A stretch of DNA of 64,000 nucleotides, from NCBI GenBank assembly GCA_001949185.1, contig BDGG01000012.1, positions 1,108,973-1,172,972 on the forward strand, read 5' to 3'. Positions 30,521 to 39,038 of this stretch are shown here, piece by piece; positions within the stretch are counted from its first letter, which is position 1; the number at the start of each line of letters is the position of its first letter. The position numbers were made by a program, and so were the translations under genes. Source of the stretch: Ramazzottius varieornatus. Its lineage: Eukaryota; Animalia; Tardigrada. The notes beneath the pieces are model-generated. The model had not been told where the DNA came from. It ran no database searches and saw only the letters and a list, made by a program, of their open reading frames with translations.

Positions 30521-31798
30521 ATGTCTAACGAAATGGCGAAAGCTGTGGATCAGCTCTTCTCCCAGGATCCAGCGGACGAGGTCGCGGGCTCCGAGAAGAG
30601 AGGCGTTGCCTTCGTTAAGTCGCGGTCGGAAGCTGTTGGATTTCCCAAAGGATGGTATCGGGAGGAACTCATAAGATCGGGAAGCGGAGTAGTTAATCCT
30701 GGGCACAAGATCGTCCATTACCACAGGTATGTCCTGCATCAACGGGGTGTTGCGCGCTGCTATCAAGCTGTCCGCAGTGGTCCGGTAAAACTGTTCGTAG
30801 ATGTGTCAGCGTTTATTTCTGAGGTCCCTTACTCTGTTGTTCTTTAAGTCCGGATGGAAGAAAATTTCGCTCCAAAGCGGATCTCACCAGATTCTTCGGT
30901 CACCGTCTAGACTTATCCAACTTCGATTTCAAGTCTGGAAAGATGCTCCCTGGATATGGCGCCAGTCAGAAGAAGAATTTAAATACGGCAAAATCTGGCG
31001 CACAGAAAGGATTAAGTGGACCTGTTAGTGCACTTGGCTCCGTGTCGTTGCAGCGCTTTCTGGACCCACCTGTTCGACAATGCACCTGCATATATAACCA
31101 GAAAGTTCGAGCTATCGAAACTTGTGGTACTAACGTGTGCAAAGACGCAAAGGATATTCCCCGCGCATCTGGTATGAAGAATCTCAAACCAAAGCCTGCA
31201 CAGGTAAGTTGCAAAAGTGTAATGAATGTCGCTTTTCCTTCTAACAAGCATTTATCTTTTATTTCTAAAGGTATTTTGGTCAAAACGGTTGGAAGGCTTC
31301 TCTGCACGGGACGTCAACGAAGGCAGGATCGACATGTCACACCTTCCGCGGGGCTTCAAAGGTACGTTCAGCGTGAGATTTGTAGGTGGTACTTTCATAG
31401 TGACAAGTTGCAGCTATCTTATTCTGAACTATTTTATAGCCGGCAGTGGTATACTCAGCGATTCAGCTGCAGTAATTAGCCTGGCGTCTTCTGTATTTAA
31501 CGCGAGCAGCCAAGGTTCTCAAGCTGGTTCGGAGCAAGGACCTATCTTTGGTCAAGGCGAGAAGTTCTCGAAGAATTTGGCTTTCGTCAATCCTTATCAG
31601 CCGCTCGTCGCAGTAAGCACATACCTGCTGCTGTTACATAGATTCCATCGTCTTCTCCAGAGCCTCGTGTAAGATCTTTTTGTATTGTAGCACGTCAAAG
31701 TGACACCCGAACTCATAGAGGAGCAGGAACTGCAAGTGCAAAGACTGCGCCGAGACCTGGCGCGTCTCATGGGTCGTCCTCAGAAAGAACGGATATGA
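30521..31798 (+). CDS. MBD2/3: Methyl-CpG-binding domain protein MBD2/3 (NuRD subunit)
   Basis: MBD FPKGWYREELIR..SPDGRKFRSK..DLSNFDFKSGK; PVRQC; PAQVFWSKRLEG; C-terminal coiled coil IEEQELQVQRLRRDL. Confidence 0.88.
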
Positions 31799-32098
31799 TC
31801 TGCCTACCTTTGTAAGTTCCACTAAACTACATTGCTTTAACATTTTCATAAACTTTATTTAAGATCGACTCGACATGTTCGCCCTTGCGTTGTTGCATTT
31901 TACATTTTATCCAATGTTAGCCGAAAGTGGCGTTTACCCGACCTCACCGTGCAAGTTCGCCATAAGCCTGAGGTCCTTGCACCTTATTATAACGTGCTGT
32001 TTGCTGTTTGTTAACCATGGGGCATGCACTAGACATGGCACGTTGCTCAATTGTCAGGTCTTCAAAAGTAAGCCTTGGCTGAATAAACTTTCCGTTTC

Positions 32099-33143
32099 TT
32101 ACATCGTAGGTAAAAATATTTCCGCTAGCATGCAACGAACACCTCCACCACCAATCTTTTCTATTATAGGAATAGATACCGTTACAATTTTACAGTATTT
32201 ATGAAGCACCTCCATTTGTTCCGAAGTGAGGCTGTCAAAGGCATTCTGGGACATGACAAGCAGCTCGCGTTCTATTGCTACTGTGCCTCGCGGACGCAGA
32301 GTCAGCATGTTCCCAGCAAAATTTCGGACTTGCTTCACTGTAATGTCCACCATAGTATGACCAGTCTTTTCCAGTGATTTTTTTACTGTACGTCGCTCTT
32401 CAGGGTCCTGTATGCACTCCAGGCATACCACGGCGAAGTTGGTCCCAATACACATCATAACGTTCGTGTGATAGATCGGCAGGCCCTGCTCATCGTAGGA
32501 CCGGAAAGAAATCGTTCGGTATCCTAGATAGGAAGCCACATGTTCCAGGAGCTGGAGATCGGTCCGTTTGGACAAGGAACCGTAAGCTCTTCGGTTGATA
32601 TGGTCGAATATAATACTTCCCTGTAGCAAAAGAAACAGAATAGAACGTATTTAAGGCTGTGTACCGGTACAGTATCGGCGCCAGAAAAATCAGTGGTATA
32701 ACTGAAACTACTCCTTCGCGTACCGTTCCTTCCAGGTAAGTTCCGGTCTGTTCCTTTTCCGAAAAGTCCGTCACGTTCGTGATGACATATCTTGTTCGTA
32801 GGTCGTCGATGATATCTGGTCTACGCTCGAGACGACGGTTAGGATGGCACATCGGATAGAGCAGTACTTCTCCATTTGAGTGCAAGGAGATCCAGTTGTT
32901 TGGGAAGATGGCGTCAGGTTTATGAGGTTCGTCTAGGTCTTGGTAGACATGCACAGTAATCCCGCAACTTATCAGGGTATCCACAACGTTGTCGAACTCC
33001 TTTAACACCGTATGGTGCAGGATTGTGGCGTCAAGGGTGCTCTGCTGCTGAAACACGTTATCCAGTGCGGCTTCTGGATTGAAAGTAAAGCGACCTGGAC
33101 GGACCATGAAAACCGCGGACGCTGATTGCTGCGTACTCTCCAT
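32099..33143 (-). CDS. Bacterial-type amidinotransferase / citrulline-utilisation hydrolase (CtlX-like), 313 aa, one intron 32621-32723
   Basis: VFMVRPGRF.FN, PDAIFPNNWIS, LYPM..NRRLERR, LEGT|GSIIFDH, IYHTNVMMCIG, FAGNML, GGGGVRCMLAEIF. Phase-0 GT-AG intron. Confidence 0.88.
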
Positions 33144-34420
33144 CGTGAAGTTCCTTCTTCAAGCAAGAACGCTGTTTCTGACAGAAAGTTCGAGCTAATG
33201 GCCTGCGCCGACAAATGTTAGTTAAATGGAGGTGTCGCTAAATTCGACCCTTATCTTATCTACAGCCGTTTGCGATACGCCGGTACTTCGCGTGAAGTGT
33301 AAAGCAGTTTGATGTGTGGTCCCGCAACGTCCTCCTTGCGCAAGCAAGAATTGTCTTTGTCAGAATTCCTTTGTCATTACTCTCAGTTGTTTCTTTGAGT
33401 GACGAGCATTGGGTCAGAACAAAGGCGGGAGTCATGCCCAGTCGTCGTTTTGCCATCCAACGATCTGGGTCTTTGTTTGGCGAAAAACCGAAACTATATG
33501 GTCCCTGACGGCCCCTGGACGTCTTGTTTATTTACATACAGTACAGTCCTAAACGTCGTATTGTACTCGTATGGCGGTTTCTTTTGCAGATGGATGTGAA
33601 GTGGTGGTGACAATTACGGAACGAAAGGCGCGAGAAAAAATCCCCACGGATATGCTGATGATTAGAAAGTCTATATGTTGAGCACGCACAAGAGAAAATC
33701 GTATCAAGACCATGGGACTTATCTGCCTGCTCAGCGATCTGGCTCCATGAAGCTTGAAGCCTTAGCATCGCATGAAGACCTCGAAGCTCTCTGCCGCGAT
33801 CTTCATTAATTGACGACGGAAGGATCTGGATGTGCATCGACGCGAACCGGATACGGGCGCGACGCTGTAGAATTGCTCTGCTGGGATCAGATATGCATCT
33901 CAGTAGAGAGCTTTTTGTGTATAAGCGAATTACGCGGTAAACACGCAATGTACACAGTAAAGATTGTGCCACACTGAAAGCATTGATTTCCCTTCTCCGG
34001 ATTCGATCAATACTACGCCCTGTCCTTATAGGAAGAACACTCAAGAATAGGTGGCGTCACCACCCATAACGGAGCAATAACAAGGCTTCCACAATCACCC
34101 GGAAATGAATGGCTGCACAGATTTCCAAAATGGGAATGTGCTGACATGGGCAAGATGGAAGAGCTTAAGCGTTGTCTGACATTGGGATGGAATATTTCAT
34201 CGGAAGAGATGCGTCTCAGCCGAGTCTCGAACCAGCCGACAGGTTGTCATTCATCCATCATCACATGACAAAACACTACATCAGCGTGTTCAGCTGGTTT
34301 TCCAACTTTTCCTATGCAACACCCATATCGGCACTTTGCTTCTGAAGAAGCCTCTGACTCAAGCGGACGTTCCATAAAATGTCAAGAGCTATTTCATGGT
34401 TGCTGTCATGCATGGATTGT

Positions 34421-34582
34421 GTAAACAGTCATCCAAGTGGGCTGTCCGGTGAGTAAACAAGCCACACACCGTACGAGCACCGAGTACGCCACCACCATTA
34501 CTTCGGCATATTCAATCATGTCGATGGTGTAAAGCCCGTGTATAACTGCCGTGTAATAGCGTTGTGGCTTTAAGTATATAAA
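34421..34582 (+). promoter_or_regulatory. Putative sHSP promoter: two forkhead-type GTAAACA sites and a TATA box
   Basis: GTAAACA 34421-34427, GTAAACAA 34453-34460, TATATAAA 34575-34582. Confidence 0.45.
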
Positions 34583-34981
34583 GCCCGGTAGCTTTGAGCG
34601 CCTTTTCTCGCTTAATTCAACAAACTAGCTCTCGGTTTTTGGATAGAAGACGTGCTCTACCTAAACGCCTCACACGATTACGGTGGCACCTATCCAATTC
34701 ATCGCATCAACCTGCTAATCATCTGCGGACGTTTTGTTGCGCTTGATTAAGGCCAGCATATCGTTGGGTCTTCGCCTGACCGCACTAACGCAGCCACGTC
34801 TTTTCGAGCCGGATCCTTGCTTAATTGAAAAGTGCGAAAAGGGTCGCTGTGGTACGCGTGCTGTAGCGTGACTCCAAGTGGCGTCTGGTGGCATCATTTG
34901 TGGTGGTTTGACAATTACTTCCTCATTAAACGTCACTCGACACACTGCCTTGTTTTCAAAGAGCCTCTTCTATCCTACACC

Positions 34982-35548
34982 ATGGCTCTTCTCCCCTTTT
35001 TCCGTCGAGAGGAATTTCCGGGTCGAGGACTCGACATTTCCCCATGGAGAGACTTGGATCCTTGGGCGGATTCTCGTGTGGGAACTCCCAATTACCACTT
35101 TAAAAGTCATTTGTCTGGCATTCTGCAGCAGATGGACTCGACGATCGCCCGTATGGATGAGGAGATGCGGACGGTTATGAAACGAGTGGGTGCGGGCGAT
35201 TATGCCGGTGGGAGCATGTTAGGCGAAGCCGCACGCTCCGTTTCCCCACAAATTAATAACGGCCTGGCTATTTATGATTTCGATGTTTCCGGCTTCACGC
35301 CCGAAGAAGTGACCATCAAGACTAAAGATAACGTTCTGGAAGTGATCGCTCGTCATGAGGAAAGGACCAAGAACGGCGAAATCTCGCGGGAATTCCGACG
35401 CACCTTCACGATTCCCGACGGAATAAACCCGGAAGAACTCAGTGGGAAACTAATCAGAGATGGCCTATTGCGTGTGGAAGCACCTTATCGACCACCGGCA
35501 CTACAGAGTTCTCCCTCCGAACGACCAGTCCCTATACAATATAGCTGA
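34982..35548 (+). CDS. Small heat-shock protein (HSP20/alpha-crystallin domain), intronless CDS
   Basis: FDVSGFTPEEVTIK..VIARHEE..SREFRRTFTIPDG..DGLLRVEAP and C-terminal VPI (IXI motif). Confidence 0.93.
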   Translation: MALLPFFRREEFPGRGLDISPWRDLDPWADSRVGTPNYHFKSHLSGILQQMDSTIARMDEEMRTVMKRVGAGDYAGGSMLGEAARSVSPQINNGLAIYDFDVSGFTPEEVTIKTKDNVLEVIARHEERTKNGEISREFRRTFTIPDGINPEELSGKLIRDGLLRVEAPYRPPALQSSPSERPVPIQYS

Positions 35549-36779
35549 ACTGCTATGCTGATGGGTCCCTCCTGTGTATAATTTTAACCGAAGTCAACTG
35601 CAAAAAACTTTCTGTTTGCTTTTCATTAAGAATATGAAAGCACTTGGCGAACCGGTTTAGTGCTTCTGGTTTTTGAGCTTTTTTGTCGCTAATGCTGGCC
35701 GCACTTTTTCCATTACTACGATACTCACGCAATGATTTATGATGGTATAAAATTACATGATCAACAATTGAGCTATTTCGTGGTGTCAATGAAAATTCTT
35801 CTTGTGTTCTTCTTGTATTTCTCAATACAAACTCGCTATATAGCCAGCTCTCATACTTCCGGGTTCCTCAATACGGCGCCACTGATGACATTGACGGCAC
35901 TAGAGTGTACATCGATTCATCATTCGAACAGATGATGCGCAGCGCTTGTCAGTTCTCTCTTAACCACACACTGTACAGCAATTAAATGTGTATTCGTAAT
36001 TATTACGACATCCTATTGTTACAGTACAAGAATGTTGCAGGACTGGTCAAAGTTTTCTACGCTTAATTGGCATGACTGCTTAGTGCTCTAAAATCGTCAC
36101 GATCTTCCGGCTACAGAAGAACAACCTGACCAAGTGCTAATTTTCTTAGGTTAGTTGATAGTCAAGCGTAGCTTACTTGTTACTTTTGTTACCGAGACGC
36201 CATGTCGGTATACAGAAGTGAGGGTTCTTGCTGAACGTGCACGAAGCGAGTGGGCTCGGCAGCGACACCACAGTAATTTACACATTCCATTTTTTCCCAC
36301 CACAACTGACCACCTTTTATCGTCCGTTGTACACGATAGCTTTTGTTGTCGACACTTCTCGATTGAAGTTGTTTGTGCATAAATTATTTATCGATGTTAT
36401 CCACCTGAATGGAACCAACGATTACTGCCGCATGACCAGCTTTTCATTCTACCAGTCGGTGTTTATTGTGTATTATTAATTTAGCTTTTCACAAGAACGA
36501 TTGCTGACGTGCGTTGTAAACATAACAATGCAAGAGGATACCTGCTTATTCTTGGTCGATAAGTCGGTATCAAAAGACTCGGACAATACGGTAGGACTAT
36601 GATGAGAGGCCACTTTGACTGTTTGACACGTGCTAGCTGGAACAGAGTACCATCTAGACACGAATGGCGGACGAACAAGTCCTATAAGAGGACACCAGCC
36701 GTTCATTTCCGTAACGCGCGAGAAGACGAGCCTGAAAGACAAATGGTACGTTGGCCAGGTAGGTACTGTAGACTGCCAT

Positions 36780-37561
36780 TCAGGTTTGTGCAGCGAACAA
36801 AGCGGGATCGATGACGTCGAAATTCAAGACGATGCTGCGACTTCGCGGAATAAACTGCCGGTACTTGATACCCGCCATGTCGAGGAGCCGTCGAGATGCA
36901 ATAAAGACCTCTTGGTCTTTGTACTTGTCGGAGACGAAAACGATCTCTTTAATGCCGGCTTGAATGCACAGTTTCGCGCATTCGTTACAGGGAAATAATC
37001 CGACGTAAACTATGCAGTTCTTGAGCGAAGCAGCGTTCCTGTTCATGATCGCATTTTGTTCAGCGTGGACCACGTAGGGATACTTGGTTTCTGCAATCAG
37101 AAGAAACCAGCTTAATCAGACCAGAAACCGATTCCAGACTCTGTAGGGTCGGCCGACGCGAGTAAGTCGGCCATCTTTTGCGCGTCCATCCGCGATGACG
37201 TCAAACACGTACAAAGCCATGGGTGGCCGACTCGCGCTTGTTGCGCGCGAATATTACCTAGATAAAGGCCTTCGCGCGCCCATGGTAGTTCATCATCGCT
37301 GCATCCTGTTGGCATCCCGTTGTAGCCAATTCCAACTATCTTGTTTTCTTCGTCCACGATACACGCCCCAACCTGGCTTGATGGATCCTTCGATCTTTGT
37401 GCCGAAAGGAAGGCAACTGACATGAAGTACTCCTCCCACGAGATATAGTTTTCGCGCTTTTTGACAGGCCGGGTATCCAGTGCACCACCATTTTGAGGCT
37501 CCGGATGTGCTGTCACTACTTCCGCCGTTTTAATCTTCGAGTGGAGTGTATCTTTCGACAT
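36780..37561 (-). CDS. DCTD: dCMP deaminase
   Basis: [31 protein letters not shown]; VHAEQNA; LFPCNECAK. Confidence 0.95.
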
Positions 37562-37903
37562 GGCTGAAGCAGACGGAGGATTATTCCGGAAGATAACTTG
37601 ACCTGCAGAGAAAAGTGGAACAGCTGATTGCGATCGTAACAAAAGCGTTTTACTTGACATGCACAGTGCACAAGACATATGATATAACATGACATGACAT
37701 CGATTTTGCTATTCCGATTTCTCACAGGCTTATCCCTTGATTCAAGATCGATTGCTCGAAGTACGACCGAGGAGTTCTCAGAGATTCCTTTATGAATCCT
37801 ACCCAGTCCTCACTCTTCAGAAGTGCTCCTTGCTGATTCACGTTTACGCTTCTGTTATCCGATCTTAGACGATAAGCGAGCGTAGTACGGTACGGCGAAG
37901 GGG

Positions 37904-39038
37904 ATGGCGGATCAAGCGGAATCGGACGAAGACACTCCACAAGGACCGGCTATCCCAAGGAACAAGCGCCTCAAAACTGGCCATCTGCACCTGCTGAGCG
38001 ACAGAAAACTCATCGTCATCCTGGAGCGATCACAGCTGGAAACGGTCAAGGTATGTGAGACAGGACTAACTTAATGAAGAATTACGTGGAAACATGGTTT
38101 GTGAGTTTGTTGTCAGTTCTAGTGTTTTGTCTTTCTCCAGAGTGGAAAGGGATTCTCGCTCCTCAGCCAAGAAAAGCACGAGCACGTACTGAAGAGGTCA
38201 AAACGTACGGAGGAAGGTTACCCACGGCCAGACATCACCCATCAGGTAGATTATTTTGTGGTTCGATATAATCGTGACTTTAAGAATGATATGAGGACGA
38301 CTTCCGGTGAAGCTGTTCAGACTTTATTGTATTCCCTTTGCTACCCGAGTTCTCAATTTTTAGTGCCTTCTAATGCTACAAGACAGCGTACTGAACCGAA
38401 TGGGCATGCTCCAGGTATTTCTGCACACAGAAAAAAACGTCCTCATCGAAGTAAATCCTCAGACAAGAATACCCCGCACGTACGAGCGATTCGCGGGTCT
38501 GATGGGTAAGTTGAGTAACACCCTAATAATATTCATGACAATTATTATCTTACGTTGGAGTTATAGCAGATCAGACTCAGTTCCTTGTTTTTATTGTTGT
38601 AGTCCAATTACTACACAAAATGAGCATTCGAGCGGCAGACGGAAACCAGAAGCTTCTCAGGGTTATAAAGAACCCCGTGTCAGAACACCTTCCTGTTGGT
38701 TGCAAAAGATACGGAACTTCACATCAAGCTGAAAAAGTCAGCGAGATCAGATCGCTTGTTCCTCCTTCTGGGCCTGTGGTTTTCGTGATAGGAGCCATCG
38801 CACACGGAAAGGTTGGTCTTATGCGAGTGTCCTTGACAGTCCTTCTGCAAAAAACTTGCAGAAAGTCACTTTTTTGGGCTTCTACAGTCTTGACTGCGAC
38901 TGTATTCGTTCACAGGTTGAAGTGGACTATACGGACGAGATAGTATCCTTCAGTAACTATCCCTTGTCGGCAGCCTGGGCAGTGGCCAAGCTATGCGACG
39001 CCTTCGAAGAAAGCTGGGCCGTGGAGAAAAACGTATAG
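37904..39038 (+). CDS. EMG1: rRNA small-subunit methyltransferase NEP1
   Basis: LIVILE..LETVK, RPDITHQCLLMLQDS.LN, IEVNPQTRIPRT..RFAGLM, IGAIAHG, SNYPLSAA. Confidence 0.95.

Follow-up and report, generated by a model that had tools for sequence, protein, structure and literature searches.

A spliced CtlX-family gene of bacterial affinity in the nuclear genome of the tardigrade Ramazzottius varieornatus

We analyzed a 64,000-nucleotide stretch (the window) of the genome of the tardigrade Ramazzottius varieornatus (assembly GCA_001949185.1, contig BDGG01000012.1, forward-strand positions 1,108,973 to 1,172,972), which corresponds to 1.109–1.173 Mb of a 1.74-Mb contig. Its minus strand carries RvY_15787, a two-exon gene for a 313-aa protein that belongs, by sequence, to the CtlX family of pentein hydrolases (putative citrullinases), a large and overwhelmingly prokaryotic family (3,525 clusters at 50% identity). 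The gene lies between a convergent MBD2/3-like gene and a divergent gene for a small heat-shock protein (sHSP), and it is the only locus of the family in the 55.8-Mb, 200-contig assembly. A first-pass annotation, made from the DNA letters alone, had proposed that it represents a domesticated horizontal transfer of a bacterial-type amidinotransferase. Coordinates below are positions within the window.

Gene structure, splicing and integration

The two coding exons of RvY_15787 are separated by a short spliceosomal intron (Table 1). Exon 1 ends with the codons CTG GAA GGA ACG (L E G T) and exon 2 begins with GGA AGT (G S), such that the intron is placed between Thr140 and Gly141, within an EGTG motif that is invariant across the CtlX family alignment; the donor site reads GTACGC, and the acceptor, TTTTGCTACAG, is pyrimidine-rich with a terminal CAG. 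The exon translations (140 and 173 aa) are 100% identical to the corresponding halves of GenBank GAV05695.1 (“hypothetical protein RvY_15787 [Ramazzottius varieornatus]”, 313 aa; UniProt name “Amidinotransferase”), a record recovered by a protein search with the intron-reading open reading frame (ORF), in which residues 1–140 scored. Taken singly, exons 1 and 2 match the Pfam model PF19420 (DDAH_eukar) with 120.6 and 196.6 bits (gathering threshold 23) and the NCBIfam CtlX model with 157.2 bits (positions 2–134) and 216.6 bits (positions 135–299). The matches thus fall on consecutive halves of both models, and the splice model restores one unbroken domain.

Splicing of this intron was observed in contigs from four runs, each from a separate study, aligned to positions 30800–35600. 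In all four runs one contig omits exactly 103 bases (joint 32619/32723), with ends that read CT..AC on the plus strand and hence GT..AG on the strand of the ctlX-like gene; in three of the four, the same contig also omits three plus-strand GT..AG introns of the convergent neighbor. The contigs must therefore stem from RNA: the intron of the ctlX-like gene is spliced out in vivo, and the two genes overlap at their 3′ ends. The first-pass prediction of a 313-aa product split by a single phase-0 GT-AG intron (LEGT/GS), for which RNA reads across 32621–32723 had been suggested as a check, is therefore borne out by our own reading of the sequence, by identity to GAV05695.1, and by RNA-derived contigs from four studies.

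The base composition of the gene is that of its host: the coding sequence has a GC content of 48.0% and a GC content at third codon positions (GC3) of 52.4%, within the GC3 range of the neighboring genes (44–62%), compared to 64–79% for Hymenobacter ctlX genes. Pfam domains identified in neighboring ORFs are HSP20, dCMP deaminase, Tim10, COMMD, and EMG1. Contamination by bacterial DNA, or a chimeric assembly, would account for the bacterial identity of the top protein matches (see below), but it is opposed by an intron that is spliced out in the RNA-derived contigs of four studies, by the continuation of these contigs into a spliced animal neighbor, by a chromosome-scale contig with animal genes on both sides, by the host-like composition, and by the closest bacterial protein being just 58% identical. 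We regard such an explanation as vanishingly improbable, and bacterial contamination and chimeric assembly are excluded for this locus, in agreement with the first-pass argument against contamination from the intron and the flanking genes; the gene is integrated and expressed.

Table 1. Features of the ctlX-like gene and of its neighbors (positions in the window).
Feature	Position	Strand	Details
Coding exon 1 of RvY_15787	32724..33143	-	ATG at 33143; residues 1-140; carries PDAIFPNNW and the RRLERR block; matches PF19420 positions 1-123
Spliceosomal intron	32621..32723	-	103 nt; phase 0; GT..AG; GC 42.7%; skipped in runs X1, X4, X6, X11
Coding exon 2 of RvY_15787	32099..32620	-	Residues 141-313 plus stop (TAA, 32101..32099); YHTN, GGGGVRCM, predicted catalytic Cys303; matches PF19420 positions 124-291
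5′ untranslated region	33144..33232 at least	-	Contig of run X1 extends to 33232
3′ untranslated region	31691..32098 (minimum span)	-	Contigs continuous between the RvY_15787 exons and the neighbor's last exon; overlaps the 3′ end of the convergent gene
Candidate AATAAA of RvY_15787	31859..31854	-	
MBD2/3-like gene (convergent neighbor)	30602..31798	+	Exons include 30847-31201, 31269-31359, 31438-31612, 31691-31798; GT..AG introns
Small heat-shock protein gene (HSP20/alpha-crystallin; divergent neighbor)	34832..35548	+	Pfam PF00011, 62.6 bits
dCMP deaminase gene	36783-37690	-	Short introns
EMG1/NEP1 methyltransferase gene	38373-38940	+	Short introns

Family membership and relatives

The full-length protein matches the NCBIfam CtlX equivalog (NF046062) with 391.8 bits (cut-off 334) over model positions 2–299. 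CtlX was defined on the basis of fitness data for Pseudomonas and Phaeobacter, and is proposed to convert citrulline to ornithine and carbamate; relative to guanidino-acting relatives, both substrate-binding Asp residues are replaced by Asn (FTRD to FPNN, and HLD to HTN) (Price et al., 2022; PMC9007349). The motifs reported in the first-pass annotation were located at residues 76–84 (PDAIFPNNW, with FPNN at 80–83) and 190–193 (YHTN, with HTN at 191–193), and the third (GGGVRCM) is part of GGGGVRCM at residues 297–304. All 52 invariant columns of a 27-row family alignment are retained in RvY_15787, including FPNN, HTN, Cys303, and His191; across 568 family sequences, FPNN is present in 522 and HTN in 541. 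In the same alignment, the protein has no extra N-terminal residues compared with its bacterial homologs, which suggests a cytosolic enzyme. An AlphaFold2 model of the protein (predicted local distance difference test score, pLDDT, of 95.3) matched ArgZ, AgrE, DDAH-1, GATM, and agmatine deiminase in Foldseek with a probability of 1.00, so that RvY_15787 is predicted to have a pentein fold (a five-fold beta/alpha propeller), in which a His and a C-terminal Cys would be the catalytic residues. Sequence searches of the PDB with the single protein or with the 27-row profile returned zero matches, and relatives there were found only by fold comparison.

The best solved structural matches to the model are the cyanobacterial arginine dihydrolases ArgZ/AgrE (PDB 6juy and 6lrf) and AstB (Foldseek E ~1e-12; template modeling score, TM, of 0.7). 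In the second half-reaction of ArgZ/AgrE and AstB, an enzyme-bound citrulline-type intermediate is converted to ornithine, which is the chemistry proposed for CtlX. However, ArgZ/AgrE share only 15–17% identity with RvY_15787, start from arginine, and retain the acidic residues that bind guanidinium. Animal DDAH-1 (PDB 6szq and others) likewise has the pentein fold and Cys-His catalysis, and the name of PF19420 alludes to DDAH (dimethylarginine dimethylaminohydrolase), but DDAH-1 is ~16% identical, belongs to a different Pfam family, and makes citrulline rather than consuming it. The first-pass view that the encoded pentein is of the CtlX type, and not a DDAH, GATM, or PADI, accords with these data, given that the equivalog cut-off is exceeded and that the similarity to DDAH-1 and ArgZ (15–17% identity) is at the level of the fold.

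RvY_15787 shares with bacterial CtlX an equal length, the same predicted fold, the FPNN and HTN substitutions, the C-terminal catalytic Cys, and 53–58% identity to Hymenobacteraceae proteins. What sets it apart is that its gene resides in the nuclear genome of an animal, is interrupted by a spliceosomal intron, shares the codon composition of the host, and has animal genes on either side; its branch in the trees is also long. The ctlX genes of Pseudomonas, Phaeobacter, and Burkholderia are associated with the ornithine catabolism genes ocd and aruFG, whereas no ocd or aruFG partner gene adjoins RvY_15787, which is flanked by the MBD2/3-like and sHSP genes; this context is common in the family, and is not a strict requirement for it. 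At two Hymenobacter ctlX loci, the neighbors encode Mqo, BLUF, SDR, and methyltransferase proteins rather than ornithine-pathway enzymes, a context that gave no pointer to the function.

A full-length search against 5.8 billion proteins, including NCBI nr, gave a list of the best 120 matches, in which every named protein is bacterial, and in which no eukaryotic protein, including any from Hypsibius or another tardigrade, was found. About 35 of these matches are Hymenobacter or Solirubrum CtlX proteins (53–58% identity), and others are from Tenuifilaceae, Bacteroidota metagenome-assembled genomes (MAGs), and Ferruginibacter; among 185,579 prokaryotic species genomes, the top loci were likewise from Hymenobacter spp. 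Hashimoto 2016 applied criteria for horizontal gene transfer (HGT) from Gladyshev 2008 and Boschetti 2012 (HGT index of at least 30 bits, or alien index of at least 45). In phmmer searches at a fixed database size, the best bacterial match, from Hymenobacter, had an E-value of 4.1e-104 (366 bits), and the best animal-labeled protein one of 6.5e-78 (279 bits), which gives an HGT index (hU) of 87 bits and an alien index of 60.3. The animal side of this comparison consisted of copepod proteins alone; the acanthocephalan protein, identified afterwards, is more distant. In a metagenome scan with the sequence that is sister to RvY_15787 in FastTree, only uninterrupted single-block homologs were found (40–53% identity). 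Two homologs that matched in two stretches, and were suspected to be eukaryotic gene models, proved to contain merely a loop insertion.

In FastTree phylogenies of 459 and 551 rows, RvY_15787 was placed within a set dominated by Hymenobacteraceae (support 99 and 95). Maximum likelihood (ML) analyses with IQ-TREE used sets of 62–63 rows. Under LG+C20 with posterior mean site frequencies (PMSF; 62 rows), RvY_15787 fell in an internally unresolved set of 15 bacterial rows (96/91), together with Hymenobacter, Chromobacteriaceae, Steroidobacteraceae, a Verrucomicrobiae MAG, and Psychromonas. With denser sampling of Hymenobacteraceae, RvY_15787 and one unnamed sequence formed the sister group of the Hymenobacteraceae clade (84/89). 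In none of the best trees did RvY_15787 group with another animal; it was always placed among Bacteroidota-type bacterial sequences.

CtlX-like sequences of other animals were identified in transcriptomes of the calanoid copepods Calanus glacialis and Neocalanus flemingeri, in Eurytemora carolleeae (RefSeq gene LOC111699712, on a 545-kb contig), and in the acanthocephalan Pomphorhynchus laevis, which has two near-identical paralogs (GJ496_000468 and GJ496_011955) on contigs that are 110 and 158 kb long. The scores on the CtlX model were 372.6 and 350.2 bits for copepod proteins and 333.0 bits for P. laevis (cut-off 334). Like RvY_15787, these genes are animal-encoded, have all the catalytic motifs, and are placed among Bacteroidota-type sequences; however, their products are only 40–45% identical to RvY_15787, and they have other bacterial partners in the ML trees. 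The copepod sequences form one clade together with ~25 short metatranscriptome-like contigs; this clade was separate in three IQ-TREE analyses (100/99, 100/97, and 100/99), and in the two later ones it fell, along with Cytophagales sequences of the Ohtaekwangia type, in a set supported by 99/98 and 96/97. The P. laevis proteins have a 45-residue N-terminal extension and a very long branch, and pair with a Bacteroidia MAG (98/85). The motif GGGG[VI]RCM was considered as a derived character common to the tardigrade and copepod proteins, and was rejected as such, given that many bacteria have it too (Steroidobacteraceae, Vogesella, and Bacteroidota MAGs).

Proposed function and origin

Exon-by-exon hidden Markov model (HMM) searches of the R. 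varieornatus assembly identified nitric oxide synthase (NOS) at two loci (C11:364515–366061 and C2:1761850–1763574), one arginase, ornithine aminotransferase (six exons, ~505 bits summed), and ornithine decarboxylase (two loci). The same searches gave no match to argininosuccinate synthase (ASS; PF00764 or TIGR00032) or argininosuccinate lyase (ASL; PF14698 or TIGR00838), and no classical PF02274-type DDAH or arginine deiminase (ADI) was detected in the genome. Given no detectable ASS and ASL, NOS-derived citrulline would be without a route back to arginine. By analogy with other penteins, Cys303 of RvY_15787, with His191 as general base, would attack the ureido carbon of L-citrulline, while Asn82/Asn83 and Asn193 would bind the uncharged ureido group, the substitution of Asn for the guanidinium-binding Asp selecting for a neutral substrate; hydrolysis of the resulting thio-carbamoyl intermediate would yield ornithine, ammonia, and CO2. 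The enzyme could thereby drain NOS-derived citrulline to ornithine, which would feed ornithine aminotransferase or ornithine decarboxylase, and so recover the carbon and nitrogen of citrulline as ornithine. The enzyme set of this genome fits this proposed role in citrulline-to-ornithine salvage.

RvY_15787 is a real nuclear gene, present in one copy, whose product belongs to the CtlX family. We consider it likely that the gene was acquired by horizontal transfer from a Bacteroidota-type bacterium and became domesticated, and that its product is a hydrolase that would drain citrulline produced by NOS. The structure, expression, and splicing of the gene, its family membership, its conserved residues, and its bacterial affinity are observed, whereas the direction and timing of the transfer, the substrate, and the physiological role are inferred. 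After the transfer, the gene would have gained an intron inside the EGTG motif, acquired the base composition of the host, and come to be transcribed and spliced. The Bacteroidota-type bacterial origin is well supported; that the transfer was independent and specific to tardigrades is favored but not proven.

Several observations weigh against this reading. The CtlX-like family is also present in calanoid copepods and in P. laevis, and an approximately unbiased (AU) test rejected a grouping of tardigrade and copepods only marginally (difference in log-likelihood 21.6, p 0.045), and did not reject a single clade of all animals (difference 19.5, p 0.175). The sister relationship to Hymenobacteraceae is unstable, with support falling to 27/87 when the acanthocephalan and its neighbors were added, and the path lengths to Tenuifilaceae-type sequences are about equal. 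Identity to the closest bacterial sequence is no more than 58%, and RvY_15787 sits on a long branch (0.7 changes per column), which together suggest that the donor is unsampled or that the transfer is old. With respect to function, the apparent absence of ASS and ASL depends on the assembly and on the sensitivity of exon-level HMM searches, and the citrullinase activity of CtlX rests on bacterial fitness data, with the authors stressing that biochemical proof is missing (Price et al., 2022; PMC9007349). A further point concerns the orthogroup OG0005423 (“Amidinotransferase (PF02274)”; 26 proteins), which occurs in 89% of nematodes and in one of the two tardigrades but in no arthropod, and is counted as a candidate synapomorphy of Tardigrada and Nematoda (Yoshida 2017). 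Its tardigrade member may be RvY_15787, based on the UniProt name “Amidinotransferase” and on there being no other such gene in the genome; the orthogroup may therefore link RvY_15787 to nematode proteins, whose placement is the main uncertainty about the origin of the gene.

These observations bear most directly on the alternative that the gene is ancient in animals, having been present in early protostomes or before (by vertical descent or through one old transfer), and was kept patchily and lost elsewhere. Homologs that reach or touch the CtlX cut-off in Calanus, Neocalanus, Eurytemora, and P. laevis are in line with such a history, as are the AU result for a single animal clade, the orthogroup common to nematodes and one tardigrade, the word “eukaryotic” in the Pfam name of PF19420, and the long branches of all animal sequences, as a result of which ML may scatter them. 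Yet RvY_15787 is closer to Hymenobacteraceae (53–58% identity) than to the other animal proteins (40–45%), it is not among the best 120 matches of the Calanus protein, the ML trees assign three different bacterial partners to the three animal lineages, the best 120 matches to RvY_15787 in the 5.8-billion-protein search include none from Hypsibius or any further tardigrade, and very many independent losses would be required; we therefore judge an ancient animal origin to be unlikely. A vertical metazoan clade, named in the first-pass annotation as the outcome that would contradict horizontal transfer, was not seen in the ML trees, with the two AU tests tempering that result. The domesticated transfer proposed there is supported in part, by the bacterial best relatives and the host composition, and is qualified by the occurrence of the family in copepods and an acanthocephalan. 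A broader variant, which we put forward tentatively as a possibility with rather less than even prospects, is that CtlX was captured repeatedly (in the tardigrade, calanoid copepods, the acanthocephalan, and possibly nematodes) as a shortcut from NOS-derived citrulline to ornithine in lineages that lost ASS and ASL; if true, this would constitute a convergent, HGT-built replacement for the citrulline–nitric oxide cycle.

A different question is whether a gene of bacterial origin might act on a substrate other than citrulline, such as methylarginines, arginine, N-carbamoylputrescine, or a carbamoylated amine. The function of CtlX is inferred from fitness data alone, and its authors ask for biochemistry (PMC9007349). 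The Pfam label denotes dimethylarginine dimethylaminohydrolase, the nearest solved folds act on arginine or methylarginine, Hymenobacter ctlX does not adjoin genes of the ornithine pathway, and in a genome without a detected PF02274-type DDAH or ADI a need for DDAH-like activity could exist. Against this, the replacement of both guanidinium-binding Asp residues by Asn (FPNN and HTN) is contrary to a positively charged guanidino substrate, and the protein passes the CtlX model at equivalog level, such that we find an alternative substrate doubtful and retain citrulline as the probable one.

HGT in tardigrades has been contested since 2015. A well-documented single case is therefore of value, and here there is linkage to animal genes, an intron removed from RNA in four studies, host-like composition, and a bacterial equivalog. 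A total of 234 putative HGT genes, set among animal genes, were reported for R. varieornatus using the HGT index (Hashimoto 2016), with similar numbers in Yoshida 2017. Like others of that class, such as clade II catalases and TPS (Hashimoto 2016; Yoshida 2017), RvY_15787 is an expressed bacterial-type metabolic gene among animal genes, and its HGT index (87 bits) would pass the published filter (30). RvY_15787 is named in no paper in the searchable literature, and nothing relevant was found there under PF19420 or DDAH_eukar. The gene adds to a known class of event, and is of further interest for the kind of enzyme, its metabolic setting, and the comparable cases in other animals: a bacterial family known from fitness genetics alone would now be placed within the arginine and nitric oxide metabolism of an animal; the apparent lack of the usual citrulline recycling enzymes provides a biochemical hypothesis that is directly testable; and, since copepods and an acanthocephalan have this family too, recurrent capture has to be weighed against ancient, patchy retention.

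Neighboring genes and transcripts

Of the two flanking genes named in the first-pass annotation, the sHSP gene was confirmed by a Pfam HSP20 match at 34832–35545, whereas the identity of the MBD2/3-like gene was recognized by eye from its translation; its MBD domain is split by an intron, and for this reason the Pfam MBD score of 16.6 bits falls short of the cut-off of 21. Within 31691–32110, the MBD2/3-like gene (plus strand, with AATAAA at 32082–32087) and the ctlX-like gene (minus strand) converge with overlapping 3′ ends, and unstranded transcript assemblies merge the two genes into a single contig. On the other side, a contig of run X1 links 33345–34447 (1.1 kb) to an sHSP exon at 34646–35600 via a 198-nt GT..AG intron; the upstream stretch may belong to the sHSP gene, either as a further exon or as an extended 5′ leader, and the joint is absent from the other three runs. 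Farther along, the dCMP deaminase and EMG1/NEP1 genes have short introns and are ordinary-looking housekeeping neighbors.

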